Assembly (NCBI GenBank): GCA_965637545.1
Contig: OZ281500.1
Coordinates: forward strand, 16,616,001 to 16,680,000
Reading direction: 5' to 3'
DNA from: Phallusia mammillata
Lineage: Eukaryota
DNA length: 64,000 nt
The notes beneath the pieces were generated by a model, which saw only the letters and a program-made list of their open reading frames with translations, was not told the DNA's origin and did not search any database. Below are positions 22,632-49,700 of the stretch, in pieces. The first letter of the stretch is position 1. Each line of letters begins with the position of its first letter. The position numbers were made by a program, and so were the translations under genes.

Positions 22632-22990
22632 TTACATACAGGCATACGATATATTATATGCCGTAACTTTGAGTCCACGATATAAAAATCTCAACAGTCA
22701 CGTATCTACCATGTGTGACTTGTCATTTTTGTCTGTCGAAATCAGCAAAAACCGCAGAGGGTTATGGAAATAACATCAGATACGTAAATAATACCCCTTC
22801 TTGCTGGCGCCTATGCCACAAACGTGACTTGGTGCATTAAAATTTGAATTAGTCTCTACTTTCTAAAATTTAGAAAATTGGAAAAGAAAAGGCCTACAGC
22901 TAAAAAAAAAACTCTTTTTGGAAGCTTGTTCTTTCTTTTATCTTTTTTTTACATATTGTTACCATAATTTTAAATTTCAATTTTATTGTC

Positions 22991-25900: not shown

Positions 25901-27278
25901 ATTCATTTTTGTGTTTATGGTCTGTGATAACATAATAGCGCATATGACACGAGGCATTAAACACGATTCAAATAAATAAAAAGTCCTAGGAAGACATCTA
26001 AACGATGATTTTTATTTGCTTATTGGACCCGAACAAAATAAAAGTTTTCATATTTTCTGGGGTTGGAAATTATAACCTGGATTGGTAAAGAATTTAGATG
26101 CTGGCATTCCCTTTAAGTTGAATGGAACCACGTGATCACCCAATTGCTCTACTTGATTCTGCTTTAAACTGAACACGTATCCATGGTAACCGTCAGCGTG
26201 GCGCTCTGTAGCGCCATCTTTCGCATGTTCAGCCCCTTCGAAGAGATTCTAAACGGATGTGTGCTTTAGTAAATAGATAATTAGCAACATATTTTGGCTT
26301 TTTTCAGTGTTTTGAGTACTATTTACGTCTGTACGTTTTTCACGTAAAAAATATTGCCACAGCTAATTTAGAAAAGAATACAATACAAATTCGGTATTTT
26401 GTAAGATTGGCCAAATTACATGGTCTAAGTCTAATCGGTTCGACTTTAACTTGTGTAGTTCTCGTGGTTTATCAGACTTTGTACAGTTACCTTTTCCGCT
26501 CCACCGAGGAGAATAATAGGTTCAGGTTTATTTTCTTTTGTTATTAAACCAAACTTTTCTTCCATTAGTTTGCCGTCGTTTGCCCGTAGCCTGACCGTGC
26601 CATCCCTGCCAGAATTATAATATGTTCAGTCTATGTAACAAATAATCCACAAAACTAGCGAATCGAGTTCCACATATATATATCTTATTTCATTAACAGG
26701 ATGGTTTTATCCTACTGGCCGATTCAAAGAAAAAAGTACCCTGACGTTTTTCTAGCACACTAATACCACAAAAGTGTCACAAAAAGTTTGTTAAAAAGTT
26801 TCTTGATGACAATATGTTTCTAGCGTACATGCGTAAAATTCTGAAAATAATATGTTAACAGTTATGTTTATAACTGTTAATTAGAAGTATAATCATCACC
26901 TGTATACCTTGGTTGATAAACATTGCTTACATCCAGTGGTCGGCAACCGCCTGTCCGCGGTCCGGTGCCGGTTCGCGAGTAGTTCGTTACCGGACGGGTT
27001 GCCGACCCCTGACTAACATAATAATGCGGAAATACAGTACTAGTCAAGAAACTTCTCACTAACACAGGTGCTACCTTTCTCCTTTACATATCTAGTTTAG
27101 GTTTAGCCTTTAAATTTTAAAGTCCACCAAAAAACAAATACCTCAAGAGCTGTAGGAACAATCTGTTCCAACGACGCAATGTAACAGATGCGTCGCTGTA
27201 AATTGATTTCACCGTTCCCCCGGTGGTTAAAATGAATCGCAGCGTCGTTCCATTTTCGATGAGAAGTTTCATTTTCAT
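22991..27278 (-). pseudogene. 5'-truncated duplicate (copy 2) of the receptor gene, frame intact
   Basis: As copy 3, offset by -4647. Confidence 0.7.
26934..27011. mobile_element. 78-bp hAT-type mini-MITE (array copy 2)
   Basis: Same element as 22287-22364. Confidence 0.7.
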
Positions 27279-27637
27279 TTACATACAGGCATACGATATA
27301 TTATATGCCGTAACTTTGAGTCCACGATATAAAAATCTCAACAGTCACGTATCTACCATGTGTGACTTGTCATTTTTGTCTGTCGAAATCAGCAAAAACC
27401 GCAGAGGGTTATGGAAATAACATCAGATACGTAAATAATACCCCTTCTTGCTGGCGCCTATGCCACAAACGTGACTTGGTGCATTAAAATTTGAATTAGT
27501 CTCTACTTTCTAAAATTTAGAAAATTGGAAAAGAAAAGGCCTACAGCTAAAAAAAAAACTCTTTTTGGAAGCTTGTTCTTTCTTTTATCTTTTTTTTACA
27601 TATTGTTACCATAATTTTAAATTTCAATTTTATTGTC

Positions 27638-30600
27638 TCAATAAAATGAATTATTGTAAGAAAACAGCTTTTCTTCGTACAAGTCTACATCATCGGGTTC
27701 CAAGCCGCTGTCACTCAAGCTGCCAATCAGCGAATCAGATGACTCCACGTCATCGGTGTCGCTCCACCTTCGTCCTGCACTAACCTCCGGTTGTGTATTT
27801 TTGCTTGAGTCTGCTTCAGGTTTCGATTTATGCTTATGACTGGATTTCTTTGACCTCCTGCATAATTCAAACAAACTACTCAACTGCAGCATAGCGAGTG
27901 GAGAATAAACTGCATAAAATCATGAATAGATACTTCAAAATAGTGCTGTAAACCTAGCAAAAAACGTAAATGACTACTATTCTGTTCATGCTCTAGCTAG
28001 GGCAATGCAATTTCAAACTTTGGTTTCTTTAGCAACGAAATGGGGAAAGCTACATATAAAACACAAAGGTGAATATATATCACTAGAGGCTACGGGCTAC
28101 GCCTGAGTTGTTGCAAAACAAACTTGTGCTTTTTCTTCTTGTGTTTCTTTTTGTGATGTTGATCACTTTCTTTTGTGTCAACATCGTCTTTCAGCAGTTG
28201 CTCTTCTTCATCATTGCTGTCAACATCTTTATTTTTGATCATTGACTTCTTTACTTCAACTTTTTTTACATTTTTTCTTCGTTTTCCCTTTTTTCGCATA
28301 CACCTAAAAAAAACGGGTTTAGCAAAACGTATTAATCACAAATATAAATTTAATTCATTTAAAATAAAAACTCAAGTAAGCATAAATGGCTTTATACTTT
28401 CCTGTTTAATAAAGATCATTGTTCTGTACAGTTCATGATCATGATCTAAAAATCGCTCATTGTACTTTGCCCTATTTAATCAGAGCGTCAAAAACAGATT
28501 TAGCCTTAACAATAGTTTTGTACAAAATCAAATAACATAACATAATACCAGCTACAGACACTACAAAATGTGATCAGGATTAATAGAAGACAAGCAACTG
28601 ATCCAACAATGATTAAGATGGCCCCGGTTTCTGTTACACCCGCGGAGTCCCGGATGTACGTGATAATGCTATAAACTCCACCTGGGTTGAGAATGTCTGT
28701 AAAAAAAAACTAGAATTTTAGAAACCAAAAACTACTAAATATAACTTCGTTGCAAGTAAACATATATGACCTGCACCGTTACGTACAAGTATTAGCAAGA
28801 AACTATGTTTAGAATTATTTAAAAATGCAATGTATATTCCTTGTTGCAAGCGATAAAATACTAAATGTTATTTGAACAAAGCTCGTAAATCCTGTATACT
28901 CAGGTGAGCTACTCCCATAGGCCGTTACAAAACTTTTCTAAATACCGATTGATCGGGTAAACTGTAAAGAGTACAGGTATTTATCTTAACCGTGAGACTG
29001 GAATTGGGCAAGAATTAAATGTAAGATTGGGGCCTTTATAAGTTGGGTTTATTTTTTAATGTAAAACCTTACCCATACCCTAATAGCCCTAACCGTCATG
29101 ATTTGCTTTTAAATACTCAAAAATATTCACCTATCGGCATTTAGCAAACTTTATCTCTAGTGAGTTTATAAGTTAAAAGAAATATAGAATTTCCGTTATC
29201 ACGAGGAAAAACACAATTAAAAATGTTTTGGTTTAAATTTACTTTTACAGTCACATCGCCACACATCGAAAAGCATCTCAAAATTGGGACCAAATAGCAG
29301 GAGCCAGTTGTCCAATGCTTGACTCAACACAAAAAGCACTTACTACCATTGAGCACAGAAACCACGTGATTGATCAGCAACCAATGGGATAGGCCTTCCG
29401 ATATAACGCATGAGTAAACACCAGACAGATCTCTGCTGCCCTGCGCAGTTGGTATGAGGAAAAGCCGACTTCTTATATACGTGGAAGTGTATTCGATACG
29501 GTGTCGAAAAAAGGGATGCCCCTTCAGCTAAACAATGAAAAAAACGTAAAAACTCAAATCAGTTTGCGAATTACGGGTAGGTGGCGCAAAGAGCATTAAC
29601 TAATATTTTTAAGCAAAGTTGTGTGAGTTAGCTGACGATTGGAGTTGGGGTGAGGTTTGATAATAGAAATGACATTAAAACTAACTTAGTTCTTAACCTT
29701 TAATTCAGTTCCTTATTCTTTACCCCTTCTGTCGGAATTTCGCTAACTTTTGTGGTTTAAGTCCCACGTTAATAGCACTAATTGCAATAAACGTGGTATA
29801 AAATGCATTTGTTCCTGCAGTAATATTCTATGGTTTCGTGTATTGTTTGGTGTAAAAATCCTAGCGATACTTTTTTAGAAACATTAAAACTAAAAAAAAC
29901 TTTTTCCTAACCAGTAAAGAGAAAATCAAAACGCACGCTTCGATCTACAGTACACGAATGATCAACATTTCATTCCACATAAGTAATAGTTACAAAAATA
30001 CATGTTCTTTGCTTTACTGTGCTACGTTTTTATACAAGTAAAAAACGTTACCTCTACGTCATCCTTGTACCACGTGATATTTGATGACTCCGTTACGTCA
30101 TAAGAGATCGGTACAAGGCAAAAAAGTTCACGAAACTCATCACGTTTAGCTGTACTTTTGTTCCCCAAAACATCTCTGTCGAAGCTGAAATCTCCTTCGC
30201 CCTTGTAGGTGGGTTTGAAGTACCAAGACTTCCACGTGACTGCATGGATACAAAATTTTGTTTTCAATTGTTGCACGAACCATTTTTACTTTTACGCCTA
30301 AAATATGTAGGATTATGATGGTCCTTTGCCCGAAAATAATGGTTCCCTTGACTGAACATTCCTATCTGGCCCAAAGTTGAAAGATGTGTACGCAACTGGT
30401 TGTTGTGGGGCATGAAACAGGCTCAAAAAATGTCAAAACGCACCATAAAATATGCGACCCGTTAGAACTTTCAGGTGACTAAAGTTTGAATCACGACGTA
30501 TAGTTTGGCAAAAAAACTAAAGCTAAAGAACAAGATTTAAATAGTACATTCATTTTTGTGTTTATGGTCTGTGATAACATAATAGCGCATATGACACGAG

Positions 30601-31925
30601 GCATTAAACACGATTCAAATAAATAAAAAGTCCTAGGAAGACATCTAAACGATGATTTTTATTTGCTTATTGGACCCGAACAAAATAAAAGTTTTCATAT
30701 TTTCTGGGGTTGGAAATTATAACCTGGATTGGTAAAGAATTTAGATGCTGGCATTCCCTTTAAGTTGAATGGAACCACGTGATCACCCAATTGCTCTACT
30801 TGATTCTGCTTTAAACTGAACACGTATCCATGGTAACCGTCAGCGTGGCGCTCTGTAGCGCCATCTTTCGCATGTTCAGCCCCTTCGAAGAGATTCTAAA
30901 CGGATGTGTGCTTTAGTAAATAGATAATTAGCAACATATTTTGGCTTTTTTCAGTGTTTTGAGTACTATTTACGTCTGTACGTTTTTCACGTAAAAAATA
31001 TTGCCACAGCTAATTTAGAAAAGAATACAATACAAATTCGGTATTTTGTAAGATTGGCCAAATTACATGGTCTAAGTCTAATCGGTTCGACTTTAACTTG
31101 TGTAGTTCTCGTGGTTTATCAGACTTTGTACAGTTACCTTTTCCGCTCCACCGAGGAGAATAATAGGTTCAGGTTTATTTTCTTTTGTTATTAAACCAAA
31201 CTTTTCTTCCATTAGTTTGCCGTCGTTTGCCCGTAGCCTGACCGTGCCATCCCTGCCAGAATTATAATATGTTCAGTCTATGTAACAAATAATCCACAAA
31301 ACTAGCGAATCGAGTTCCACATATATATATCTTATTTCATTAACAGGATGGTTTTATCCTACTGGCCGATTCAAAGAAAAAAGTACCCTGACGTTTTTCT
31401 AGCACACTAATACCACAAAAGTGTCACAAAAAGTTTGTTAAAAAGTTTCTTGATGACAATATGTTTCTAGCGTACATGCGTAAAATTCTGAAAATAATAT
31501 GTTAACAGTTATGTTTATAACTGTTAATTAGAAGTATAATCATCACCTGTATACCTTGGCTGATAAACATTGCTTACATCCAGTGGTCGGCAACCGCCTG
31601 TCCGCGGTCCGGTGCCGGTTCGCGAGTAGTTCGTTACCGGACGGGTTGCCGACCCCTGACTAACATAATAATGCGGAAATACAGTACTAGTCAAGAAACT
31701 TCTCACTAACACAGGTGCTACCTTTCTCCTTTACATATCTAGTTTAGGTTTAGCCTTTAAATTTTAAAGTCCACCAAAAAACAAATACCTCAAGAGCTGT
31801 AGGAACAATCTGTTCCAACGACGCAATGTAACAGATGCGTCGCTGTAAATTGATTTCACCGTTCCCCCGGTGGTTAAAATGAATCGCAGCGTCGTTCCAT
31901 TTTCGATGAGAAGTTTCATTTTCAT
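27638..31925 (-). pseudogene. 5'-truncated duplicate (copy 3) of the receptor gene: half LamG - Ig - TM - tail, frame intact
   Basis: Same 8 terminal exons as the intact gene. The first exon is cut at its internal ATG and has lost its splice acceptor. I saw no stop or frameshift in the exons. Coding status unknown. Confidence 0.7.
31581..31658. mobile_element. 78-bp hAT-type mini-MITE (array copy 3)
   Basis: Same element as 22287-22364. Confidence 0.7.
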
Positions 31926-32275
31926 TTACATACAGGCATACGATATATTATATGCCGTAACTTTGAGTCCACGATATAAAAATCTCAACAGTCACGTATC
32001 TACCATGTGTGACTTGTCATTTTTGTCTGTCGAAATCAGCAAAAACCGCAGAGGGTTATGGAAATAACATCAGATACGTAAATAATACCCCTTCTTGCTG
32101 GCGCCTATGCCACAAACGTGACTTGGTGCATTAAAATTTGAATTAGTCTCTACTTTCTAAAATTTAGAAAATTGGAAAAGAAAAGGCCTACAGCTAAAAA
32201 AAAAACTCTTTTTGGAAGCTTGTTCTTTCTTTTATCTTTTTTTTACATATTGTTACCATAATTTTAAATTTCAAT

Positions 32276-32281
32276 TTTATT
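32276..32281 (-). terminator. AATAAA polyadenylation signal just after the receptor stop codon (repeated in each copy, e.g. 18330-18335)
   Basis: Minus strand reads TGA GAC AATAAA, followed by an AT-rich tract. Confidence 0.5.
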
Positions 32282-32284
32282 GTC

Positions 32285-35200
32285 TCAATAAAATGAATTA
32301 TTGTAAGAAAACAGCTTTTCTTCGTACAAGTCTACATCATCGGGTTCCAAGCCGCTGTCACTCAAGCTGCCAATCAGCGAATCAGATGACTCCACGTCAT
32401 CGGTGTCGCTCCACCTTCGTCCTGCACTAACCTCCGGTTGTGTATTTTTGCTTGAGTCTGCTTCAGGTTTCGATTTATGCTTATGACTGGATTTCTTTGA
32501 CCTCCTGCATAATTCAAACAAACTACTCAACTGCAGCATAGCGAGTGGAGAATAAACTGCATAAAATCATGAATAGATACTTCAAAATAGTGCTGTAAAC
32601 CTAGCAAAAAACGTAAATGACTACTATTCTGTTCATGCTCTAGCTAGGGCAATGCAATTTCAAACTTTGGTTTCTTTAGCAACGAAATGGGGAAAGCTAC
32701 ATATAAAACACAAAGGTGAATATATATCACTAGAGGCTACGGGCTACGCCTGAGTTGTTGCAAAACAAACTTGTGCTTTTTCTTCTTGTGTTTCTTTTTG
32801 TGATGTTGATCACTTTCTTTTGTGTCAACATCGTCTTTCAGCAGTTGCTCTTCTTCATCATTGCTGTCAACATCTTTATTTTTGATCATTGACTTCTTTA
32901 CTTCAACTTTTTTTACATTTTTTCTTCGTTTTCCCTTTTTTCGCATACACCTAAAAAAAACGGGTTTAGCAAAACGTATTAATCACAAATATAAATTTAA
33001 TTCATTTAAAATAAAAACTCAAGTAAGCATAAATGGCTTTATACTTTCCTGTTTAATAAAGATCATTGTTCTGTACAGTTCATGATCATGATCTAAAAAT
33101 CGCTCATTGTACTTTGCCCTATTTAATCAGAGCGTCAAAAACAGATTTAGCCTTAACAATAGTTTTGTACAAAATCAAATAACATAACATAATACCAGCT
33201 ACAGACACTACAAAATGTGATCAGGATTAATAGAAGACAAGCAACTGATCCAACAATGATTAAGATGGCCCCGGTTTCTGTTACACCCGCGGAGTCCCGG
33301 ATGTACGTGATAATGCTATAAACTCCACCTGGGTTGAGAATGTCTGTAAAAAAAAACTAGAATTTTAGAAACCAAAAACTACTAAATATAACTTCGTTGC
33401 AAGTAAACATATATGACCTGCACCGTTACGTACAAGTATTAGCAAGAAACTATGTTTAGAATTATTTAAAAATGCAATGTATATTCCTTGTTGCAAGCGA
33501 TAAAATACTAAATGTTATTTGAACAAAGCTCGTAAATCCTGTATACTCAGGTGAGCTACTCCCATAGGCCGTTACAAAACTTTTCTAAATACCGATTGAT
33601 CGGGTAAACTGTAAAGAGTACAGGTATTTATCTTAACCGTGAGACTGGAATTGGGCAAGAATTAAATGTAAGATTGGGGCCTTTATAAGTTGGGTTTATT
33701 TTTTAATGTAAAACCTTACCCATACCCTAATAGCCCTAACCGTCATGATTTGCTTTTAAATACTCAAAAATATTCACCTATCGGCATTTAGCAAACTTTA
33801 TCTCTAGTGAGTTTATAAGTTAAAAGAAATATAGAATTTCCGTTATCACGAGGAAAAACACAATTAAAAATGTTTTGGTTTAAATTTACTTTTACAGTCA
33901 CATCGCCACACATCGAAAAGCATCTCAAAATTGGGACCAAATAGCAGGAGCCAGTTGTCCAATGCTTGACTCAACACAAAAAGCACTTACTACCATTGAG
34001 CACAGAAACCACGTGATTGATCAGCAACCAATGGGATAGGCCTTCCGATATAACGCATGAGTAAACACCAGACAGATCTCTGCTGCCCTGCGCAGTTGGT
34101 ATGAGGAAAAGCCGACTTCTTATATACGTGGAAGTGTATTCGATACGGTGTCGAAAAAAGGGATGCCCCTTCAGCTAAACAATGAAAAAAACGTAAAAAC
34201 TCAAATCAGTTTGCGAATTACGGGTAGGTGGCGCAAAGAGCATTAACTAATATTTTTAAGCAAAGTTGTGTGAGTTAGCTGACGATTGGAGTTGGGGTGA
34301 GGTTTGATAATAGAAATGACATTAAAACTAACTTAGTTCTTAACCTTTAATTCAGTTCCTTATTCTTTACCCCTTCTGTCGGAATTTCGCTAACTTTTGT
34401 GGTTTAAGTCCCACGTTAATAGCACTAATTGCAATAAACGTGGTATAAAATGCATTTGTTCCTGCAGTAATATTCTATGGTTTCGTGTATTGTTTGGTGT
34501 AAAAATCCTAGCGATACTTTTTTAGAAACATTAAAACTAAAAAAAACTTTTTCCTAACCAGTAAAGAGAAAATCAAAACGCACGCTTCGATCTACAGTAC
34601 ACGAATGGTCAATATTTCATTCCACATAAGTAATAGTTACAAAAATACATGTTCTTTGCTTTACTGTGCTACGTTTTTATACAAGTAAAAAACGTTACCT
34701 CTACGTCATCCTTGTACCACGTGATATTTGGTGACTCCGTTACGTCATAAGAGATCGGTACAAGGCAAAAAAGTTCACGAAACTCATCACGTTTAGCTGT
34801 ACTTTTGTTCCCCAAAACATCTCTGTCGAAGCTGAAATCTCCTTCGCCCTTGTAGGTGGGTTTGAAGTACCAAGACTTCCACGTGACTGCATGGATACAA
34901 AATTTTGTTTTCAATTGTTGCAAGAACCATTTTTACTTTTACGCCTAAAATATGTAGGATTATGATGGTCCTTTGCCCGAAAATAATGGTTCCCTTGACT
35001 GAACATTCCTATCTGGCCCAAAGTGGAAAGATGTGTACGCAACTGGTTGTTGTGGGGCATGAAACAGGCTCAAAAAATGTCAAACACACCTCTTATAAAA
35101 TATGCGACCCGTAAGAACTTTCACGCGACTAAAGTTTGAATCACGACGTATAATTTGGCAAAAAAACTGAGCTAAAGAACAACATTTAAATAGTACATTC

Positions 35201-38200
35201 ATTTTTGTGTTTATGCTCTGTGATAACATAATAGCGCATAAGACACGAGGTATTAAATACGATTCAAATAAATTTCAAATAAAAGTTCTAGGAAGACATC
35301 TAAACGATGATTGTTATTTAGCGGAAATAAAGGAAGTTTATTTGCTTATTGGACCCGAACAAAATAAAAGTTTACATATTTCTGGGGTTGGGAATTATAA
35401 CCTGGATTGGTGAAGAATTTAGATGCTGGCATTCCCTTTAAGTTGAATGGAACCACGTGATCATCCAACTTCTCTACTTGATTCTGCTTTAAACTGAACA
35501 CGTATCCATGGTAACCGTCAGCGTGGCGCTCTGTAGCGCCATCTTTCGCATGTTCAGCCCCTTCGAAGAGATTCTAAACGGATGTGTGCTTTAGTAAATA
35601 GATAATTAGCAACATATTTTGGCTTTTTTCAGTGTTTTGAGTACTATTTACGTCTGTACGTTTTTCACGTAAAAAATATTGCCACAGCTAATTTAGAAAA
35701 GAATACAATACAAATTCGGTATTTTGTAAGATTGGCCAAATTACATGGTCTAAGACTAAGTCTAATCGGTTCGACTTTAACTTGTGTAGTTCTCGTGGTT
35801 TATCAGATTTTGTACAGTTACCTTTTCCGCTCCACCGAGGAGAATAATAGGTTCAGGTTTATTTTCTTTTGTTATTAAACCAAACTTTTCTTCCATTAGT
35901 TTGCCGTCGTTTGCCCGTAGCCTGACCGTGCCATCCCTGCCAGAATTATAATATGTTCAGTCTATGTAACAAATAATCCACAAAACTAGCGAATCGAGTT
36001 CCACATATATATATCTTATTTCATTAACAGGATGGTTTTATCCTACTGGCCGATTCAAAGAAAAAAGTACCCTGACGTTTTTCTAGCACACTAATACCAC
36101 AAAAGTGTCACAAAAAGTTTGTTAAAAAGTTTCTTGATGACAATATGTTTCTAGCGTACATGCGTAAAATTCTGAAAATAATATGTTAACAGTTATGTTT
36201 ATAACTGTTAATTAGAAGTATAATCATCACCTGTATACCTTGGCTGATAAACATTGCTTACATCCAGTGGTTGGCAACCGCCTGTCCGCGGTCCGGTGCC
36301 GGTTCGCGAGTAGTTCGTTACCGGACGGGTTGCCGACCCCTGACTAACATAATAATGCGGAAATACAGTACTAGTCAAGAAACTTCTCACCAACACAGGT
36401 GCTACCTTTCTCCTTTACATATCTAGTTTAGGTTTAGCCTTTAAATTTTAAAGTCCACCAAAAAACAAATACCTCAAGAGCTGTAGGAACAATCTGTTCC
36501 AACGACGCAATGTAACAGATGCGTCGCTGTAAATTGATTTCACCGTTCCCCCGGTGGTTAAAATGAATCGCAGCGTCGTTCCATTTTCGATGAGAAGTTT
36601 CATGTGTGATGCTAAGTTGTGCTCACCTGCACAAAACAAAAAATAACATTTGGAGAGCGTCAACTCGATTCAAATCGACCTAATTTCCTAGATATTTATG
36701 CATTTCGCACCACAGTAACTATCAGAAGGATTTAAATGGAGAAAAGGCATTGAAGTTTAAACAAGATACTGTGACTATTTTAATGTTTCATTAAATTGAT
36801 GTGTCATTATACCTCGAGCATGTTTAACAGATGCTAAATTCCTAATTGTATGACGTCAGTTGGAAACAAAGTGACATTGACCTCTGATAAAGAAGATAAT
36901 TCCATCTCCTACTGTTGGCTTGAAAATCATTTCAAGGGTAGCTACGTCACGACGATCGACGTCACTGGCTGACATGACGTCGCCGGGATCGTAGACCTCA
37001 CCAGGGTTGCTCCACCACACCATGGAAAGAGGAAATCGCATTCTAGATTGTAAAATAATAAAAAGTGTAAAATGTGCTTTAAAATAGTGATTTCAGGGAT
37101 TTCATGGAGTACTTTTTTAAAATGTAAACAACAACATTAATTTTGAAAATTAAAATAATAATAAATAATAAAAAAACTGTTTGTTTTTCAAGACCATCGC
37201 CAATTCAAAAAATAATGCATTTTTTGTACTGAATCCCAGGGGCGTATCCAGAAATTTTTAAAGGGGGGGGTCCAACAATGTTTTTGGGGGAAATCCCCAA
37301 TGACGTCACACGTCGTTCAAAACGACGCGTTATGCGGCAAAGCACTTTTTCCAAAATTGGCGGTTTCTCTACCCATCTAATTGACAGGAAGAACAGGTAA
37401 TTTTAGCAAAAGCTTTGTAGTTTTCTGATTTCGCCGCTGCTATCTAGCTTACTCAGCCAAACTGCAACTGCAAAATAAGCGTGACTGTCAGGTAATCAAA
37501 ATCGTTGCTTAAAAAAACAGGGTCCAATTTCTAAAGAACTAAATCTCTTGCTGAAGCGGTAATCCTACTGTTAAGTTGCGCAAAGTCACGAATGCACTAA
37601 AGGTGGTAACTGCAGAAGGCATAAATTGTGCCTGGCAAGTAACAAATTACCCTAATAACATAACTCGATTTACATCGATCTAATGTTTTTGACAAACTAT
37701 TACGTGTTTGGCGGATCAAAGCAACACAACATTACACGTTTTCAACACTTTTACATTGTTCAAATGCAAAAACAGTTTGATATGTTGCACTTAGTGCAGT
37801 TACCATTTAGCAAGAAACTGCTATCAGCGTCCTAGCCGGAACGTAACTTTCCGATTGTTAGCGCATAAACCTCCTTATTAAACCCTTGTTACGTCACAAT
37901 TGGCGATTAGATAACAAGCGAATACAAGAGATTGAAGGCTCACGTCTTTGAGATAACGACTCCCTGTTATCACGCAGTGGTAAACGGAACGATTTTGGCC
38001 TATTTAATTTACGCACAACTTTTTGAAAAGGGGGGGGGGGGGGGTCCGGACCCCCAAACCCCCCCCTTGGATACGCCACTGCTGAATCCCAACTCTTCAT
38101 GTGCATTATTGCCCCAAGGCCCACTTGGAAAATTAACTGCTTTGAAACTACACTTGATTTCAAAATTGATTTTTGCGGCAAATCATTAAAGTGTTGGTAT

Positions 38201-41200
38201 AAGGTTTACTGTAAAAATCTGGTACTGTTAAAAATGTCTCAACACCTTTGACGACCGTCGAAATAAGGAATAAACGCTTCATCGTGTCTTTGTTCTTGAG
38301 TAACTTTTAAATATTCCACTCCCTTACTTGCCATTGGATCGTTGAGTTGCGAATGTTTCGACAAACTGCGCTTCTTCAAGTTAAACTCTTGGAAGTTTAC
38401 TTGTAATTTTGATACGTAACCTGAACGAAAAAAGCGTTTTTCTCGAAGACAAAAGTCTTAAATCTTGATAGAATTACGTTTATTGGCTAGTAGCAATAGA
38501 CTGTTACAGTAAAAAATTACAGACCAATAAACAGATTTAATAAAAAAATCTGTTATCAATAAACAAAAATAGTTCAATTAACAGGCATGCAAATAATGTT
38601 TTGCGTTTAACGTAAGTATCATAGTATCAAATTGTATTACTGTCACACACTACGGTTTAAGTTTGACATTTGTTACAGGAACGTTCAGTTTCTTTATACG
38701 TGCTCCTACCTCTAAAACCGATATCCTGTTTTCGGACTTTCCCCAAACCGATACTTCCTTTGGGTCTTAACAAAATCGCTCTTGTAGTTTTGAGTAAGGA
38801 GTCAGCTTTGTAAGAACCCAACCAAGTTTTGGTGCTATCTACATAATCCAAAACATTCCCCCACAAGCTTGTGTTGGTGACGTTAGTGGTGGGGGCGGGA
38901 GTGGGGTCAGGGGTAGTTTTGGGGTCGGCCCGAAAAACTGCCGCCATGTTGACGTCATCGTTTACTCGGACATTCATGACGTCACTGACAATGGTGATGC
39001 GAAATGTGTTCCAACTGGCAAGCTGTAAATGACGTCATACTACAGTGAAAACGTAATATCACACCCTATCATGTATAAGCAACGTAATTTTTTTGGAGGT
39101 CAGTTTTGAGTAAAAAATGTTTGGTCACATGACGTCAGATTAGTGACGATAAGGTGTGATATCACATTTGCTACCTCACAACTTACGCGAACTTTGCCCA
39201 CTTGCATCGAAATTACATCTGAACCGTTGAGCGACGCCGTCACCATCACGTGACCGCTCTCGCCCAATGAGACGCGCACAAACTCGTGACTTGCTTTTCG
39301 TTCCGCTTTACTGCGCGTTTTTGAGTTGATTTTGACGTTTAAAGGTGGAGGAGTTGATCCTACAGCGTCATGAGGAACCCCCGTAAATGTAAGGATTGTG
39401 CCGATGAATGAGATTGGTTTAAAGCGGAGGAAGATTGAAAGGATGGAAGACGCCTCCTGGGGTCGAAAGAGGAGCACACTGTGTTCCAGAAGATGTGCGA
39501 TCACGCCTTGATAATTATCTGCGAAATATTAAAATAAACAAGCGTCACATTAAAAATACAGTCACATTACTCATTTTAATTATTCTTAGTTGTTTTGTAC
39601 AGTGGAATATTTTGCAAATATGTATGTCTAATTTCTTTACACAGTCTAAAACATCAGGCGTTTTGTGCCACAAACATCAGCAAAAAACACAACTTATACT
39701 ACTATCATAAAAACAGGAAATTATAACTTCACTAACTTCGACAAGGAAGGCCTTGACAAGCCGAAAATTCAGATGAAGGTCCAGGACACTTTTTCCCCAA
39801 ACCATCTGGTGATGGTCGTGTGCAATCTCTCAATCTTATTCTCATTCCACCTCCACATGTGCTTACCATACATCGTGACCACGGTTCCCATATGTCAGCC
39901 CAACCGCCATTTTCTTTAATAAAAATAAAACGGAATAAAAATCATTACACTTTGGTTTTTTAAACGTGTCAAAATAGGTATTTTTTCATTTACTTTTCAT
40001 TTCTATATAAACGCGCTTGTTTTCACTTGTGCATTACATTTTACACTGATGATGACAATAGTTTTGTCGAAACGTTTGTTTTAATAAAAATGAATACGTT
40101 TTACTCTACGTCGCTGGCAATTTGCTTTTTATTAAAGCTTTTCTAAAAGATTTTTAAAAAACTATATTTTTTTCAACTACCTTAACGTTGGAACGTTGTT
40201 ATTTTAAAACTAAAGCTTGGCTTAGGGCCGTACGCTAGGCCCACCCAAAATTACCATGTGACAAGGCATAAAAGACAAGCAGATCGTCATATCAGCAATT
40301 GTGGTCAAACTATCATGAACATGTTTTAAAAAATGGAATCAGTTCTAAAGCCTTACTGCTGTTTAGCAACAACGACTTATATATAAACCATCATACGACT
40401 GTTTCAAGAGATTTACCAATAGAAGATCCTTTGTACCTACTGTATATAAAGGTACCAGGACCAATTACTGCAAATTTTGCAAACCCCTTTAGGACTGCTT
40501 CCTTATACGTTTAAATTGCGTATTACACACAATGTATAAATATTATGAAGGATTCAAACACTTTAAAACATGTTTTTAGGGGGCAGACAAACAAAATTAT
40601 GAGGTCCCGAATGCAGACAACGCTCCAATGCACACCAAATTTTCAGTTCCAAATACACGTGTTTGTGACATCACAATGATCGTTCGAAGAAATATCTTCT
40701 ACAAAAATAGTCATACACCGTGTGTGGAATATAGCACGCGCGTTTAATCCCCGCAAATTTTTGTCTTTGATCCTAACAAGCGCTGTACAAGTGTATTAGA
40801 CCGCAGCTTACACCTTCAATTGTCAGATCAACTATAGTCGGATAACTACGTACGCGCTCATCCGACGTTTATTACGAAGAGGTGGTCTTTGTTGTGGTAG
40901 AAACGTACGCTTTAACATGGTCATACTAATGTGTATATTTTTAGAGCAACATCCATGTTGGTGCATTATGCGTTTTGATTACTCCAAATCAGGAGTCGGC
41001 AACTACTGGCACGCGTGCCATAAGGTTGGCACGCGAGGTGGTTTTTCATGGCACGCCAGTCGATTTGCGTGTTTATATTGAAGTAACAATTTAACCTGTT
41101 ACACTGTTTGTTTTCAGTTTTTTTTATCATGCATTGTCTTAAATTCAGCCTTACATGCACAAAACACTCTGCTTCCTCTTTATTATTGATATCTGCTGGC

Positions 41201-44200
41201 ACGAACCACTATTATCTAGAAAAGATGTTGGCACGCGAAGTCATTGGCACATGGAAATAACAGGTAAGTTGGCACGAGTCGCCTAAAAGGTTGACGACCG
41301 CTCCTCTAAGAGTCTAAATAATCAGTTTTTCGAGAAGAAAATGATATTAGTCAATGAGTTGCGATCAAATGTAAAACCTGTTTGTGGGCCTTTTTCTACA
41401 AAATTTATATAAATGATTCGGAGTGTGTGAAGTAAAAGAATAACCTCGGTACTACGTGACAATATTTAAAAAAAATTAAATTCATTTATATGTGTTTTTA
41501 AACAATTTTTTTGCTGTATAATGAAAACCTGACTTTGAATCTAAGCCTATACAACCCAATATAATTGATCTTACAATTAACAATAGAAATATATAAAATA
41601 AATATTTGTATCTGTCGCAAGGTGTCTCACGTGAGCATGGCGGAACATCCGTGCATCCTCTTTGTTGTTTTTCGGATCCAACACAATACGCAGCTGTGTG
41701 GAATGGCAAACAGTCACGAGTTCGTGTAACCCGACCTGCTTGTCCGCATGGTTCGTCACAGGCACTCCATGCTCCCCACTGCCCCCAAGTGTGTGGCTTT
41801 ATAAGCGGTTCCGCTGTAACACAACAGGATTATACAGTGTAAAAGCATATGAGCCAATAAATGATAAGCTGCAGACAGTGCCGTTTGATGGCTAAACTAG
41901 CCAATGCGGCCGATCTCTCGTCACCAGCTGCACTGATGAGACCTTATAGGTCGAAACAGTGTGCACTGTCTGCAGCTTAGGATTATACAGTTTATTACAA
42001 ATTGGACGGTTGGTTGTATGGTATATAATTTTCGCGTAGAAACCGAAAACAGTAAATTGTGCTCTCTGGTAATAATATAATGATTTACTCAGCAAAATAG
42101 CGCACAGAGACACAAAAAAATATCTATGCGTTAGAAAATCTAAGTCCATGTACAAAAACATGCACATAGTTTAAAATGACTCCATAAATGTGAATTACAG
42201 CTTCATGAATGACTCAGCATCTAATGAACGCAGTTTTCAAGCTAATATGCAAAAAGATTTGAGAGCAGTGCCACATATTTTAAATCAACGATGACTTCAA
42301 CTTTATACCAAACCTTTACTTAACTAGTAGCCCTGAAAGTTTTGAATTAGCGCCACACAACGAATAGATTTTTTTAACAATCAAGATCAAATTAAGATGG
42401 TTTCATGCACCACCACATTTTATCACCAAAAATGATTAATTCGCGGCACCCTTGGCAATCTCCCACTGCACACCATGGTGCAGCGGCAGAGTGGTTTGAA
42501 AGACTGGAGTAGTTGTGTAAGATACAAGTTACACATAACATCCACATATACGGGGATTACACGCAAATTAATGTTTCATAACCACATCATGAAGAAGATA
42601 ATTATCAGTTTCAGGCACTTGACAATAAGGAGAGACGACAGCATCCAGAAAATACATACAAGCTTAAAGGCACGTATCACAACCGCACACACGCATGGAT
42701 GTGGATGCTAACAGCTTTAATCAAGTGCAACCGGGCCATGTGGTTTTAGCCAAGTCTAAGGTCAAGTTCGTGTTGATTATGGATATATTCTACTATGGTG
42801 GTCTTTTATATATTGCCTCTATTAATGTTCTTGAAAGTAAGTTGTAGGTATTTCGTGAGATTTAAATTGACTTGGCGTGGATAGATCATCGTTTGCGATT
42901 TGGCAAGACGTATGTAGACCAATTTAAATACAAGAATATCAGAATTTTTTCTCACAGCACATAAAGTGATGTAATAAATATTCAAATTGTTAAGTCTTCT
43001 GTGAGCAGGTATTACAACAATGTTAACATAAAACGAACCAAATAATAAGCAATCAGGTAAGATTTTATGTCACCGATAAATAAAAATGTTTATTATCTCT
43101 AATAACAAAAACAATTGTAAAATATTTGTGTGTGGAAGTATTGGGCCCTAGTAAACGGCAATTGATTGACAGCTCAAGTTAAGTGGACCAGCTGTTGTAG
43201 GCAAGGTTTAAACCTACATTAGCACGTACCGAAGCATTCCATTTCGATCGTTCTGTTGCACTTGCGCACTTCAGAGAACTTTCCATCACACTGGCTTCCC
43301 CAGTACTTTGGCGGCCTGCATCCTCTCCACCGAACCTGCTCCCCGGCGCCGCATGTGGCGGAACAAGGTTGCCACTCAAGCCAGGGTAGCCATTCAGCCC
43401 TATCTAAAAGTGGCAATGATGTGACATTGTTTATCGTTCAAGTGGCGCCGTATTTTGGGTAATTATACCATTGCAACGGACGCTGTACTTTACGCAGTTG
43501 AGCAAACTCCAATAGACGCTCTAAAATGACAAAAAATCTTTGGATTAGTGGTGTTTAATAAGAGAGTTCCTGACAATGGAGTTGTAAAACGCAAAGACAG
43601 GGCACGGTCTTAAAGTGCCTTCGATGACAGTAACTATATGTTGGTGTATTGATGGATCTGTACTGTGACGTAAATTGGTGCTTTTTGAAAAGTTGTAAAT
43701 ACATGTTGTCATAACATGACGTATACACTTGTTTCTATAAGTTCCTCCATATAAACATACATTGTAAGAAGAAGACATACAACTAATTGCGGATAAGCCA
43801 CACGGATTTATGACACGACCAAATTGTTGAACTTGGAATTCCAAACATGGAAAATGTTCGTGCTTGTACAAGTATCGTCTGATATTTGCATTGTTGACTC
43901 ACGACTTTTGACTTTGCATAGGTCAAGTGGATAACGATGACGCAGCTGTGACGTAAAACACCACGGACATGGAAGTGTCGCGCGATTTGTCAATTTAAAG
44001 CTTTGCGTTTCTGCGTTACGAGGCTAATTAAAATACCAACCTCAATGTACAGTGATACATTAATTTATTTTGTCTTGGCACAATGAGCCGTGATTTTAAG
44101 AACACGTACCGTAAAATAGGGAATTCGGTAGAAAAGATTTAAAACAATCGTAACTTCAAAAATTCAATTAAGTGCGTGTGGTCAAACGCAAAATAGTCGT

Positions 44201-46747
44201 TGCCCAAATGATTTCAAAACACACCATATACCGTTAGCTTGGTAAGTTAGTTTTAAACACTTTTATATTCGGGTTTTTTCACAATCTCCGAATGATTGTA
44301 AAAATAATCCCGCCTATTTTGCCCGGCAAATTTTATAGAAATATTATCTAACTGAATGCTTTGCTTGTAGTTCAAAAATTTCATACGTTGTTAAGCACCA
44401 TGTGAATGGAGGTATTTGTTCGCACTAGAAACGAATGTTGATTTCCAAAACAAGCAGTTGAACCAGTCAAGTGGCTCCGCACGTGGGTTGCTTATGGTGA
44501 GTGTTTCATCTGTTGTGTGCAAACAGGTTTGCCGCCTCCACATGACATTTAAGGGGGGTGCACGATTCTATGGCTCCCTGCATCACTGAACATGCTTTTT
44601 GAGTAAATTAATGGAAAGGATTAAATTAAGGTCCCGTGAGGACAAACATAAATCTCATTGGATGAACTTAAACGTTTGCTGCTTCGTGCAATTTTCAAGA
44701 TTTTGACCAAAATAATAAAAAATGTATTTTCGTCTCCCACCCCTTGTTGAGTTCGCCAATAATAGATGAATCATTTTAAACTTCTGGCGTTTGTCAAATT
44801 TCGTGGAAAGCATGTACGTAATTTGACAGTTTTGTTTTTCTTCGTGTATTTGTGTTAACAGTCGGCTACTGTGAAATAATATAATTGTAAAGCGTTGAAT
44901 AAAATAAAAGTTAAAGTACAGCAGCAGTTATCTTTGACTATCGGTATATTGGTTTTGTGATATTTTTAAGGTTAACACAGGGTATACATTTCATGTGTAT
45001 CATTAGTTTGATCTTTTTTGGCTCTATTACAACTTCTATCATTATCAAAGGTAGTCCGCAAGCTTTTGCTCTTGACCCGACTTTACCGACCACCAAGCAC
45101 GTACAAACGTTAGCTTCATGTCACAACACAGCACTATTATCGTTGAAAATCCGGAAACCCTATAACGTTACGCCGGTACACAAAACTTAAGCGCATGGGT
45201 TAAGCGTGAGCGGCAGGTTTCAACAGCACCGATAAAAACAACTTCAAAAAAACCTTAAAATAAAGCAAACGCTACCGTGTTCGGTTCCCCGCACGCACAT
45301 GGGCATTGGAACAGAGCAATTTTGCAGGGATGGCGTGATCAGCGATCCATATACGCCACTCAGAATCAATTAGACACGTAACTATGGGTAACGGACAGGG
45401 TTCAGTGCGCTATCAGCAACTTGTCTTGCTAACGAGGCAAGTGAATGCCAAGGTGACGACCCTGGAACAATGCTAAAGCGTTCTGTTTCAAAACAAGGCT
45501 TTGCGATTGGCCACTATAACACTTACCCTGCGGTCGCGGGGTTACTCGAGGTCATCCCACCGCGATGCGATGGATTGACGGTTTAAATTCCTCAGCGTTT
45601 TGTTTTGTTTCGCAGAGGAAAAACGAGAATGTTTTTGCGTGAACTTTAACCTTTTCCTTGCGAGAAATGTTTTTGTGCATATGTCAGCAATATTGACTGT
45701 CATGTTATGTCACTGCGCAAGAATCACAATCAATCATATTTCTTGATGCATGTTAACGGAAAAGATCCTGAGAACGTTTGGGTTCATAAATGCGTGTGGC
45801 CTACTTTTTTAGCGGCTTAAACTGGCAACAGCAGCATTCGCTTCTACAACAGTAACGGGTGTCAATCGGCATTTTGACAACGGCATTAACGTACCGTTTC
45901 TTCTAGGTCTCCAATAATTGCATGAGCATCGTCGAATTTGCATTGGTGAGTGAAACACTGTCGCTCCAATTCCGGTGAAGAGGCCATATGAAACCGCTGG
46001 AGGGCGCGATCCGCACGTTGGTTCGTGGTCAGATCCTCCAGGTCAGCTGCAACGACTGCAACAGAAAAATTACATAGACATAAGTGGAAATAAAAGAGGC
46101 AAATATATATGCCCCATCACTTCATTTGGTGATAAAATAAATCGTTCAGCATCTGGACCTATAAGGCTAAAAATTTAGTCACTAACAGAACTGACACAGC
46201 GAGTTATTTACTCCATACGGATTAAGTTAAACAAACAACAATCTATCACAAACGGGTACTTTGGTAGAGCATATATATAACCTTACAGTTTAAGGTTCCC
46301 AAGCCAAACGAGCACTTTATTCCGCAGAGCACGTTTGAGGTAAAACTAAGAAAAAATTCTTCCGGTCGAAGCTTAAACTTGAGCCTATAACGAAGATAAA
46401 GCGCTGTGCAATTGTTTTACGTTTTGCGGCTGATTTGTGCAAACTTTCTGCCCCAGTCGAGAGTCAAATAACCGAGTTTTACCCAAACCGCACCAAGCAA
46501 GGTTATCCTGTCGAGCTTAGACAAATGAACCATAGAAAAATGTGCAAGAATGGTCTGGTGCTGGTGCTGGGTTTCAGTGTTCTCATTTCAACACAAATGC
46601 TAGGTTGCTTGCTTGCTATTTACCTTCATCAACAATGCTGCGTTTGGTAATTCGTCTTTCAAATGCCCGCCCACTTGCAGTCGAGAAAACGATGACGCAG
46701 CATAATCCAATAAGCTGAGTTATAGAGATGGATCGATGGTGATGCAT
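32285..46747 (-). CDS. Type I membrane protein: signal peptide - degenerate Gla - 3x TSP1 - 2x laminin G - Ig - TM - basic/acidic tail, 18 coding exons, about 1067 aa
   Basis: Exons (minus): 46747-46624 (MHHHRSISITQLIGLCCVIVFSTASG signal, RITKR), 46055-45895 (LERQCFTHQCKFDDAHAIIGDLEET), 43945-43903, 43403-43230 (WLPWLEWQPCSATCGAG), 41813-41631 (WGQWGAWSACDEPCG), 39913-39737 (WEPWSRCMVSTCGGGMRIRLRDC), 39518-39187, 39022-38710, 38420-38246, 37042-36882, 36626-36473, 35936-35822 (IILLGG), 35573-35402 (GYHGYVFSL), 34886-34699 (LFC...ITWYKD), 34174-33991 (DLSGVYSC), 33343-33196 (TM AILIIVGSVACLLLILITFC), 32950-32771, 32504-32285. All phases match; 3204 nt, open. Donors at 38245, 36881, 35401 and 32770 are GT but weak, so these boundaries are less certain. 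Confidence 0.85.
36265..36342. mobile_element. 78-bp hAT-type mini-MITE (array copy 4)
   Basis: Same element, with one extra TIR mismatch (GTTGGC instead of GTCGGC). Confidence 0.7.
37237..38081. mobile_element. Non-autonomous hAT-type DNA transposon, 845 bp, intronic
   Basis: 14-bp TIRs CAGGGGCGTATCCA / TGGATACGCCACTG (1 mismatch); perfect 8-bp TSD CTGAATCC at 37229-37236 and 38082-38089; subterminal poly-G/poly-C tracts. Confidence 0.9.
39990..40120 (+). mobile_element. Penelope-like element pLTR/3'-end relic
   Basis: TATATAAA, then the hammerhead core, then AATAAA, the usual layout of PLE pseudo-LTRs. No RT or GIY-YIG ORF nearby. Boundaries approximate. Confidence 0.45.
40037..40091 (+). 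ncRNA. Minimal type I hammerhead ribozyme motif (Penelope-like element type)
   Basis: CTGATGA 40046-40052; extra T; stem II GACAA / TTGTC around loop TAGTT; GAAA 40069-40072; palindromic stem III AAACGTTT; triplet GTT; stem I ACA/TGT plus CATTTT/AAAATG. Confidence 0.65.
40990..41304. mobile_element. Degenerate hAT-type MITE with TGGCACG subterminal repeats
   Basis: Left end CAGGAGTCGGCAAC, right end GTTGACGACCGCTC (degenerate TIR); several TGGCACG copies at both ends; TSD only 5 of 8. Confidence 0.55.
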
Positions 46748-49700
46748 CTGGGAAAATGCAGGTTCTTGTCTTTGTTTGGGCAAGAAAACAAGGGTATGTG
46801 GTTTACTTTCCTATAGCGGTCTAGGAACTAAGAAAACAGTTTTTCATAGATCCGTAAACAAAATGGCAAAAAATCCAATAAAACAGCAGAGGATGCTATT
46901 GGTCAATATTTAAACTACCTTCCCTGACCGACAAATCTATTCAAATTTGAGCAAAAATATAAAACAACAGTGGTTTTGTTTGCGGCTATAAGACGGCGTC
47001 TACTGCTTTAAAATGAACAATTTTGATTGGGTCTGGAATTTTGTGTATCATCGTATTTGTGTAGAACGGTTTTACTGTTATGATGCTGCGGAAGTGTTAT
47101 TTTCATTCTGTACAGAACGTTTAACATAAATAGGCAAGTAAAAATTGTTTTTATTAATTTTTTTACAGACAGTCGAACGCTTGTTTTAGGAACGGATACA
47201 AGTTTTGAAACATACAAATTTCACACTTACACAACAAGCATTTGTCAATGCAAACCAAATAAGGTCGCACAGAATAATCAACATCTGAAATACGTTAGGC
47301 TAAAGTATTGGTCAGGAGCCAGAACCACCCCTTAATAACAGTCACTCCAAAGCCATTGTCAGTCATCGCGTAACAACGAACTGTCACAATGACAATTGTC
47401 ATGTAGAATGTTTTTCTAACCAGAAATAGTTCAGGCACAGCTATACTTGGGTTCCGACACTTAGGGGTCTAATCCTGATAAAGGAGAATGAATTCGTTTA
47501 AATACAAACGTGTCGCTCAAAGGGGTCAATGTTGTTGCAGTTAGGAGATTGTGGCGCTTAGGGCAACGTATAAATATTGCTTTAGACGTCGCGGGGTTAT
47601 AGTTTGTGCGCCTTAGTAGCAAAATAAACAGGGTTGAAAAAATCTAGCGTGCGGCGATAACGTACTAATAAATCAAGATTAGTGAGAGAATTCATGAATA
47701 GGCTTGACAAGAAAACAGAGTCAATTGATATTTGTCCTAAATTCCGAGTCTTTTTTTGACATCGTGGTTAAGAATGGCCTCGGGAGATTAAATGCCTTCT
47801 GAATTACACCTTATTGGTGCAACGAGTGTTTATTTGGTGCGAGCGGCTTGTGGAAAGCTAGAGCGTTTTGACAACAACCAGATAAAATTAAGCTGACAAA
47901 TAGATTGGGTTTGGTTGTTTTGGTATTCCCATAAGACCACCTGCGTGTCTGTTAATTAATCATCGCTAAAACAGAAGGTTATTTCCCTGTCATTTTGGTT
48001 TTACAGTACACAAATACAACAAAAGATTTTTCGGAATGCTACCAAAACTACACTGGTTAAATTTAAAACGTTTATTTTGCAGAACTCGACTACAAGTTAT
48101 ACAAATCATTTAACAAAAGATTATGCATCAAAAGCATTCTTCGGGCTTAAAAGTTATACATAAAAAAATGTCCTGGTCAAAATTTCTTGCTAAACAGTGG
48201 AGTGAAACAAGCAATGGCTTACCCTGCTTTCTAGGTTTGTAAATCTGAACCTAGCAGTCACTTTATCATTGCTCTTATTATACAGCTAGTTAACTCTGTA
48301 ACTACAAACTTGTAAAGGTGTAAAGATAAGCAACCCGTAACCAGCACTTTTTACTTCTTATCTTTTCTAACAGCATTCAAATATTATCCCATGAGGTAAG
48401 TGAAAATCGCAAATTTGTTACATTAACGCTTTATAAATAAGTTTATTAGCACTGATTGTTGTTTTGCCCATCAATAATTTGTACATGAATGTGCAGCGTC
48501 AAATGTAAGTTACGTCACATTTAAGCACTTGCTCAAAATATGGCTACGTGCAGTTCCAGAAGGTAAGTTTACAAAAAAATGCACATGCACATTCCTAGTG
48601 AAGTAATTGCACGGAGAAGCCAAACCCTAATGCGTTTGTAATTTCAAAACTTCGTCTTGTTTGCCTTGAAAATGCCACCCAGTTATGTAATGGGGTCGTG
48701 CGAAACATTTCGACAACAGTTTCAAGTTCTGGCCGTTTTCGCAAACTTGCAACTAAAAGAACACAAAACTGCTTTTACCCTATCTCCCTGCGCCGGAGGT
48801 CCCGACTGCACTGTTGACAGAGGTTACGGTTAAATTAGCAAGCGGATTTGGTTCTCCAAAGTTAGTGAACTGTTGACTGCCTGACAGTGCGTCTAGCTGA
48901 CTGCCAAATAACTGCCCGCCACAAAAATATTTCACCACGTCATTTTGACTCCTCACTTGTACTCATGTACGACTGTTCGTTTCTTAACTTAAAATAGAAC
49001 AACACATCTCATATGCAGTTAGCCGCACTAACAGGTAGACCAGCAATTACTCTGTCTTTAGGCTAAGGCGCCCATTGTCATGTTGTATGTGTTTGTTTTG
49101 TAACAATTACAGATTGTCTTGTTTATTGTAAATATATATTTACATGTAGCTTGGTGCCCCATTTCATATTTCAATTTATGTAAACCTATATAGCATGATA
49201 TAACTGCTTAAGTATTTTTTGTAATTTTGTATTCAACTTGGTGTTTTTGACTTCTGGCTTTACTTGCGGAACCTAAAGTCGCACCAACAGTTCAATTATT
49301 TCAGGATTTTTATTAAAAGAGACGCAACAGCTAACCTAAAAAATGCGGAAACGTGAAAAAATACAATAAGAAATGTGCAGAACGCCTTAAATCAAACAAC
49401 ACACAACAAAAAATCAGAAAATTGACAAGCCACAAGGAACTTTGCACTGGTCGAGTGCCGGCTTTGTCGGTAATGTTTTCATGGAAAACGTCGTGCAGAG
49501 CAAAATATGTGCACAAGAAAATAAAGATTGTCAAACTAAAATCCGAACGTTTTGCATACCGGTGATTTTCTATGCAAGCTACTGGTGTCAAAGACATCTA
49601 TGAGTGTTTGTGTGTGGCAATCAGAATAGCTGCAAAAATTGGCAATTGCAAATCTACCGTGTAACATGCGAAAGACAAGTGTGATGTGATTTAATTTAAC

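Follow-up and report, generated by a model that had tools for sequence, protein, structure and literature searches.

A tunicate membrane protein that combines a degenerate Gla-type module with TSP1 repeats, LamG domains and an Ig domain

Introduction

Does a tunicate membrane protein that carries both a Gla-type module and a pair of laminin G (LamG) domains belong to the lineage of Gas6 and Protein S (PROS1), or is it a separate construction from modules of the same kinds? The question is raised by a gene on the minus strand of a 64,000-nucleotide stretch of Phallusia mammillata DNA (contig OZ281500.1 of assembly GCA_965637545.1, positions 16,616,001 to 16,680,000; hereafter the window, to whose first letter all positions refer), which a sequence-only reading had described as a Gas6/Protein S-type ligand module joined to an Ig-transmembrane anchor. 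The gene is real and expressed, comprises 18 exons and encodes a single-pass membrane protein in which a signal peptide, a Gla-like module, three thrombospondin type 1 (TSP1) repeats, two LamG domains, an Ig domain, a transmembrane (TM) helix and a charged tail follow one another. Its modules are familiar ones in a new arrangement, the decayed Gla domain is unusual, and public records contain only uncharacterized predictions of the protein. In the explanation that we consider probable, this type I membrane protein would be restricted to tunicates and, with its relic Gla module, three TSP1 repeats, two divergent LamG domains, Ig domain, TM helix and tail bearing a tyrosine motif, would serve as an adhesion, recognition or signalling receptor.

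Gene structure and transcript evidence

The coding sequence opens with the ATG at 46747 and closes with the stop codon 32287-32285, in agreement with the ends given previously. The gene model was rebuilt using the Ciona orthologue P0003 as a tblastn guide, followed by enumeration of frame-compatible GT/AG pairs. The resulting coding sequence (CDS) of 3213 nucleotides (nt) encodes 1070 amino acids, with GT-AG boundaries at every intron and a frame that is open throughout; the sequence-only reading had arrived at the same number of exons and at approximately 1067 residues. Open-frame scans from 46747 to 32285 revealed peptides of the TSP1 type together with a hydrophobic helix and a tail of charged residues, and the window contains no runs of N. 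The exons, all on the minus strand, are as follows.

E1, 46624..46747, minus strand: start codon (the first ATG after an in-frame stop), signal peptide, then basic RRITKR; junction chosen by orthologue alignment and GT-AG
E2, 45895..46055, minus strand: propeptide-like and Gla-like exon of 161 nt, phase 1 to 0, with LER-x-C-x4-C
E3, 43469..43520, minus strand: 52-nt mini-exon with an aromatic YW stack and two Cys, closing the Gla-like module; found by tblastn with P0003
E4, 43230..43403, minus strand: TSP1 repeat 1 (WxxWxxW, CSATCG), phase 1-1, Pfam TSP_1 E 6.9e-11
E5, 41631..41813, minus strand: TSP1 repeat 2, phase 1-1, Pfam TSP_1 E 2e-05
E6, 39737..39913, minus strand: TSP1 repeat 3, phase 1-1, Pfam TSP_1 E 1.7e-11
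E7 39518-39187, E8 39022-38710 and E9 38420-38246, minus strand: LamG1-like region, Pro/Thr-rich insert and linker, collinear with Ciona residues 274-556
E10 37042-36882, E11 36626-36473, E12 35936-35822 and E13 35573-35402, minus strand: LamG2, from orthologue alignment and RNA junctions
E14 34886-34699 and E15 34174-33991, minus strand: one Ig-like domain (C...W-Y-K...D-L-S-G-V-Y-S-C), junctions present in RNA
E16, 33196..33343, minus strand: stalk and TM helix (residues ~911-937), from a hydropathy peak, junctions present in RNA
E17 32950-32771 and E18 32504-32285 (including the stop), minus strand: 130-residue cytoplasmic tail with D[DE]VDLY[ED], junction set by RNA

The RNA data consist of assembled contigs from four runs (X1-X4) of one study, mapped onto 32230-38229. 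In these spliced contigs all eight junctions from E10 to E18 match the model exactly, including the last one (32771|32504), which was ambiguous from sequence and was fixed by the RNA, while a loose contig end at 37044 carries the last ten codons of E9. In run X2 a contig of 3292 nt was identified whose positions 1770-3292 correspond to E10 to E18 through the stop codon (1523 nt). The upstream remainder of 1769 nt compares with 1691 nt of modelled E1-E9 CDS plus a leader of ~78 nt, and the contig thus spans the length of the complete CDS. About one quarter of the sampled words of 32285-42284 were present in the four runs, roughly the exon share, and for 42285-46900 the share in runs X2 and X3 was 0.10, about the exon fraction there. 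The 18-exon structure of the sequence-only reading is therefore confirmed in RNA from the end of E9 to E18, nine junctions in all, whereas its E1 to E9 junctions are based on orthologue collinearity, the length of the 3292-nt contig and the exon-sized word shares at the 5' end. That a single gene and transcript encodes the domains in this order, as had been proposed, is borne out by the RNA contigs together with the collinear tunicate orthologues.

A Gla-derived module that has lost its carboxylation targets

An N-terminal profile constructed from three tunicate sequences (the window protein and its orthologues from Ciona intestinalis and Clavelina lepadiformis) was compared with solved structures. 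Gla-domain chains accounted for 45 of the 45 matches, the best being factor IX (2.3e-06), and the matches include factors IX, X and VII, protein C, PRRG2 and prothrombin; profile positions 30-60 align to residues 13-43 of factor IX. Pfam Gla (PF00594) was the top match yet remained below threshold, at 14.9-16.3 bits against a cut-off of 27. The LER.C....C motif, with its C-x4-C loop, and the YW aromatic stack are invariant across the three species, and the E3 pattern YW..L.CVK....C is kept in all of them. Exon architecture is equally similar, as E2 comprises 161 nt compared with 161-164 nt in two canonical Gla exons of the same genome (L002 and L004), and its donor is located exactly 63 nt past the first Cys codon, likewise in both canonical exons. 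Since the profile matches Gla domains only among solved structures, the homology is real and the N-terminal module is judged to be truly Gla-derived, in line with the sequence-only reading, which had called it Gla-like and which the exon size and donor position also uphold.

The residues on which vitamin K chemistry acts are largely missing from this scaffold. A typical Gla domain has nine to twelve conserved Glu, which become gamma-carboxylated and bind calcium. Glu occupies two of the 12 Gla positions in the window protein, in Ciona and in Clavelina alike, and the Glu of the LER motif is the sole one shared by the three; the corresponding counts are 10/11 in L002, 9/11 in L004 and 10/10 in the aligned part of factor IX. 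Canonical Gla exons of the same genome retain the carboxylase recognition residues F-16/A-10/L-6 and a dibasic cleavage site (VF.D...A...L.R.KR/RR), where the window protein presents V, E and T at the three offsets, and no basic site is conserved in the alignment of window, Ciona and Clavelina proteins. The module is best read as a relic whose scaffold descends from a Gla domain and which is apparently a vitamin K substrate no longer. Because only two of 12 Glu are left and the propeptide recognition residues are lost, calcium- and Gla-dependent phosphatidylserine binding by this module is unlikely, and the phosphatidylserine bridging through Gla that had been suggested for the protein finds no support. 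With disulfide, aromatic stack and exon structure kept, and carboxylation targets and enzyme docking lost, the protein offers a natural case in which to study the role of a Gla scaffold independently of vitamin K chemistry, in a genome where canonical Gla genes persist alongside. A deletion in the omega loop of the Gla-like exon was considered and dropped, as 33 residues precede the first Cys compared with 34 in canonical exons.

At least twelve canonical Gla exons were found elsewhere in the genome, three of which read as textbook propeptide-plus-Gla. Approximately eleven Gla exons (including L002, L006-L008 and L010-L012) are clustered within 70 kb on contig C2 (9690577-9757812), eight of them above the Pfam cut-off, and more canonical exons are located on contigs C8, C1 and C5 and on C2 near 30.3 Mb. 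From this cluster and the further exons it follows that this tunicate retains, and has expanded, genes of the canonical vitamin K-dependent type.

Structure of the TSP1, LamG and Ig regions

Families, structures and databases were searched with single window exons or with the two orthologous proteins as queries. The three TSP1 repeats (PF00090) score 42.6, 25.1 and 44.6 bits in the window exons, against a cut-off of 21.6, and display the WxxW and six-Cys pattern. Exons E4 to E6 are symmetric (phase 1-1) and are positioned between a phase-1 end of the Gla module and a phase-1 start of the LamG region.

The LamG exons of the window are too short or too split to be scored singly and were assigned by alignment to the orthologues, at ~40% identity. 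Of the Pfam laminin G families (PF02210 and PF00054), LamG2 matches Laminin_G_2 with 38.7 bits (1.6e-09) in Ciona and 34.8 bits (2.7e-08) in Clavelina, above the cut-off of 22.9, while for LamG1 the sole Pfam matches in both orthologues are Laminin_G_1 and Laminin_G_2 at a sub-threshold 15-21 bits. Neither phmmer nor profile searches related the LamG pair to any solved LamG chain, Gas6 and SHBG included, and a search of a 5.8-billion-protein database with the LamG region, at E up to 10, returned only the Ciona and Clavelina orthologues and no Gas6 or PROS1. Among language-model (ESM) neighbours of the pair, "PROS protein (Fragment)" and generic LamG both reached 0.95, followed by neurexin-2 (0.94) and SHBG (0.93, rank 9). 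The PROS neighbour is thus practically level with generic LamG and neurexin-2 and can serve only as a lead.

Among solved structures, a profile built from the Ig domain matched Ig-superfamily members in 31 of 31 cases, with Robo1 the best (1.3e-04) and CD22, titin and PTPRD also represented; none of these 31 matches, at E up to 10, was a chain of a TAM receptor (Axl/Tyro3/Mer). Pfam Ig_2, Ig_3, I-set and C2-set produced sub-threshold matches only, and the Cys...Trp...DxGxYxC core is visible in the alignment. No EGF domain was identified by Pfam in either orthologue.

Membrane topology and cytoplasmic tail

The TM segment (residues 915-933) constitutes the highest hydropathy peak of the protein (3.03), the second highest being the signal peptide core (residues 7-25). 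A basic run, RKKGKRRK, directly follows the TM helix, as in the positive-inside arrangement. The ectodomain extends over ~885 residues, of which the stalk between Ig domain and TM helix occupies ~25. The 130-residue tail is at first Lys-rich, then acidic and Ser-rich, and the motif D[DE]VDLY[ED] near its C-terminus (32288-32380 in the window) is common to the window protein, Ciona P0129 and Clavelina P0130. In Ciona, isoforms X1 and X2 stop short of this tyrosine motif.

Conservation and distribution in tunicates

Exhaustive HMMER searching with E7, the largest exon (frame 39103-39528), identified the 947-residue protein P0003, which is isoform X1 of Ciona intestinalis LOC100180507, annotated "uncharacterized protein", and returned tunicate-type relatives only. 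Full-length collinear orthologues are LOC100180507 (42% identity) and Clavelina lepadiformis LOC143461756 (37%), both annotated only as uncharacterized or "Ig-like domain-containing" predicted proteins. They share with the window protein the domain order, the degenerate Gla module and the tail motif, the tail of the window protein being longer and Lys-rich. In a contig from a JGI sample, representing a fourth species, the exons from the Gla-like module to the first part of LamG2 (LamG2a), counted as the first ten of the gene, follow in the same order, and a Logan fragment (P0001) is 58% identical across the LamG1 exon. The whole layout is conserved in at least three ascidian lineages.

Beyond the tunicate orthologues, the search of the 5.8-billion-protein database yielded TSP1-only partial matches covering at most 26% of the query, from the SCO-spondin, ADAMTS-like, hemicentin, thrombospondin, BAI1/ADGRB1 and semaphorin-5 families. 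The sequence-only reading had not recognised the architecture from vertebrates, and in these protein searches no vertebrate or other non-tunicate protein displayed it. As far as the searches reach, the protein appears to be tunicate-restricted, and no paper on this gene, its orthologues or its architecture was found in the library searched.

Two metagenome contigs of 43-52 kb, L013 (1-18555; JGI sample 3300001913) and L014, contain exons of this animal gene, and the environmental or host-associated samples from which they derive thus hold tunicate DNA.

Relationship to Gas6 and Protein S

The window protein resembles Gas6 and PROS1 in its N-terminal Gla-type module, its C-terminal tandem LamG pair and the phase-1 module exons in between. 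Unlike Gas6 and PROS1, which are secreted and have the order Gla - EGF x4 - LamG x2, it comprises three TSP1 repeats for the four EGFs and an added Ig domain, TM helix and tail, and it combines the loss of Gla positions and propeptide recognition site with a LamG pair that has no match to theirs at the sequence level.

The protein could nonetheless be a member of the Gas6/PROS1/SHBG lineage in which TSP1 repeats have replaced the EGFs and which, through its own Ig-TM anchor, would operate as a one-chain phosphatidylserine bridge or engulfment receptor. We regard this as unlikely. It is favoured by a single chain that, like Gas6 and PROS1, includes both a Gla-derived module and two LamG domains in tandem, and by the PROS fragment being the named ESM cluster closest to the LamG pair, with SHBG close by at the similarities given above. 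Also in its favour, the origin of GAS6/PROS1 has been dated after the split from urochordates (PMC4221892). The phase 1-1 TSP1 exons would make an exchange of EGF for TSP1 mechanically easy, so that the replacement envisaged by the sequence-only reading is permitted by phase logic. TSP1 repeats of BAI1 bind phosphatidylserine. No canonical Gla exon of this genome was found near a LamG exon and an ordinary Gas6-like gene was not seen, but this absence is weak evidence because the exon-by-exon genome scan also missed this gene's own LamG exons.

Several observations point the other way. Nearly all Gla positions are non-Glu, with a single conserved one, and with the carboxylase recognition and cleavage sites lost as well the classic calcium/Gla lipid-binding surface cannot form. 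The LamG pair matched no solved LamG chain and retrieved no Gas6 or PROS1 from the protein database, and the embedding neighbour that favours kinship is tied with generic LamG and neurexin-2. EGF domains are lacking, and the Ig domain is without TAM affinity, its best matches being Robo1, CD22, titin and PTPRD. Thus neither the "Gas6/Protein S-type" label of the sequence-only reading nor a TAM-like Ig domain is supported. Kinship with Gas6/Protein S is, on the sequence evidence, unproven, and a role in engulfment is possible but unsupported, a matter of pure conjecture.

A more far-reaching proposal can be formulated, in which the gene would be the tunicate descendant of a Gas6/PROS1/SHBG ancestor, either a membrane-tethered forerunner of the secreted TAM ligands or a ligand-receptor fusion comparable to the ascidian Gla-RTK, and would recognise dying cells via TSP1 and LamG rather than Gla; we hold it to be distinctly unlikely. 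Tunicates are not known to have Gas6/Protein S. Outside vertebrates, the present gene is the sole one found in these searches in which a Gla-type module occurs together with a pair of LamG domains, and it is therefore the obvious candidate for testing the origin of the TAM-ligand architecture. If it is merely a lineage-specific mosaic adhesion protein, its value is mainly descriptive.

Comparison with other membrane proteins

PRRG1-4 and the ascidian Gla-RTK/Ci-Gla1 combine a canonical carboxylated Gla domain near the membrane with intracellular PY motifs or an intracellular kinase domain. The window protein shares with them a Gla-type N-terminus on a single-pass membrane protein, PRRG2 being among the profile matches; it differs in that ~800 residues of TSP1, LamG and Ig sequence intervene, its Gla module has degenerated and no kinase is present in its tail. 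To our knowledge, none of the four Ciona Gla proteins in Kulman et al. 2006 has this architecture.

Membrane-anchored TSP1 repeats with WxxW and CSxTCG are also displayed by BAI1/ADGRB1 and semaphorin-5, where the similarity is confined to TSP1 (17-26% of the query). With BAI/ADGRB, in which HormR, GAIN and 7TM regions follow the TSP1 repeats, only the TSP1 part aligned (17-20% of the query), and the window protein has a single TM helix. In contrast with these receptors, which are without LamG or Gla, it has no GAIN/7TM region and no Sema domain. Neurexins, Caspr and CSPG4 are, like the window protein, type I membrane proteins displaying LamG domains, and neurexin-2 is an embedding neighbour. 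Unlike them, the window protein has no EGF spacers, two LamG domains only and no PDZ-binding end, and it carries additional TSP1 repeats, Ig domain and relic Gla module; comparison with solved chains by phmmer and profile search detected no sequence kinship with LamG domains of the neurexin/Caspr/CSPG4 type.

Proposed function and alternative explanations

The receptor explanation given at the outset, which we consider probable, would involve the following. The protein would reside in the plasma membrane and mediate adhesion or recognition at the cell surface, with TSP1 and LamG modules that bind extracellular ligands such as glycans, matrix or partners on cell surfaces. At the N-terminus, the relic Gla module would act as a disulfide-stapled structural or protein-binding cap and not as a calcium/phospholipid binder, while phosphorylation of the conserved tail tyrosine may drive signalling or sorting. 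Such an architecture probably originated when exons encoding phase-1 modules were shuffled onto a pair of Gla exons. Conserved, expressed and equipped with a tyrosine motif, the protein is a tractable uncharacterised receptor, the more so as its Ciona orthologue belongs to a species in which knock-outs and in situ analyses are routine.

A number of points weigh against this explanation. The ligand-binding and signalling roles are inferred from domain types, and the nearest embedding cluster of the LamG pair, the PROS fragment, leaves room for Gas6/PROS1 kinship. LamG1 stays below the Pfam cut-off, and an AlphaFold2 model of Ciona residues 290-760, computed from an 11-row alignment, reached a mean pLDDT of 35 and gives no fold-level confirmation. 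One or two of the leftover Glu residues could be carboxylated. Alternative use of the tail is possible, because two Ciona isoforms (X1 and X2) terminate ahead of the tyrosine motif. Finally, the E1 to E9 junctions were not read directly in RNA, as contigs were mapped only to the region indicated above.

Alternatively, the membrane form could be a precursor whose ectodomain is shed or processed to yield a secreted, matricellular TSP1/LamG product, in which case the tail would be needed for trafficking alone. TSP1 and LamG are typical of matrix proteins, and the partial matches comprise SCO-spondin, ADAMTS-like proteins, hemicentin and thrombospondin. The window protein also contains a furin-like RRITKR after the signal peptide and R-A-D-R ahead of the Gla-like core, and the stalk of ~25 residues between Ig domain and TM helix would suit such processing. 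However, neither basic site is kept in the Ciona and Clavelina proteins, and the TM helix, basic juxtamembrane run and tyrosine motif are kept in three species, which argues that the cytoplasmic part matters; this explanation is quite improbable. It is hardly credible that neighbouring Gla/TSP1 and LamG/Ig/TM genes, or a decaying pseudogene, were read together into an artefactual model: the unread E1 to E9 junctions and the position of the 3' part within a four-copy tandem repeat, which could confuse models, would allow this, but the open frame is unbroken across the GT-AG introns of all 18 exons, E9 to E18 are joined in spliced contigs, the 3292-nt contig fits the full CDS, independent Ciona and Clavelina gene models share the order end to end and the same exon order recurs at the fourth locus, and a two-gene artefact was consequently rejected on RNA and orthologue evidence.

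Repeats within and beside the gene

A unit of 4.65 kb is present in four tandem copies with 98-99% identity (17977-22625, 22625-27272, 27272-31919 and 31927-36603), the array spanning 17977-36603. The 3' part of the gene lies in the first array copy (A), with the breakpoint inside E11 at 36603. The downstream copies B to D contain intact, near-identical exons E12-E18, encoding Ig domain, TM helix and tail, and are without the signal peptide, Gla-like and TSP1 exons. The array could be a recent duplication or an over-expansion in the assembly.

Position 34731 in E14 is G in copy A and A in the other three copies; the contigs of RNA runs X2-X4 show A there and those of run X1 show G. Copies B-D differ from A at four positions of E13, and over E13 the contigs of X2 and X3 are identical to copy A. 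This mismatch between E13 and position 34731 may be due to allelic variation, to a chimeric contig, or to splicing of the E13 of copy A into a downstream cassette.

Within intron 9 (37230-38030), contigs of both strands were observed at a depth of up to ~50, well above that of the exons, with many variants and a joint at 37368|37535; they look like a transcribed dispersed repeat that is not part of the gene.

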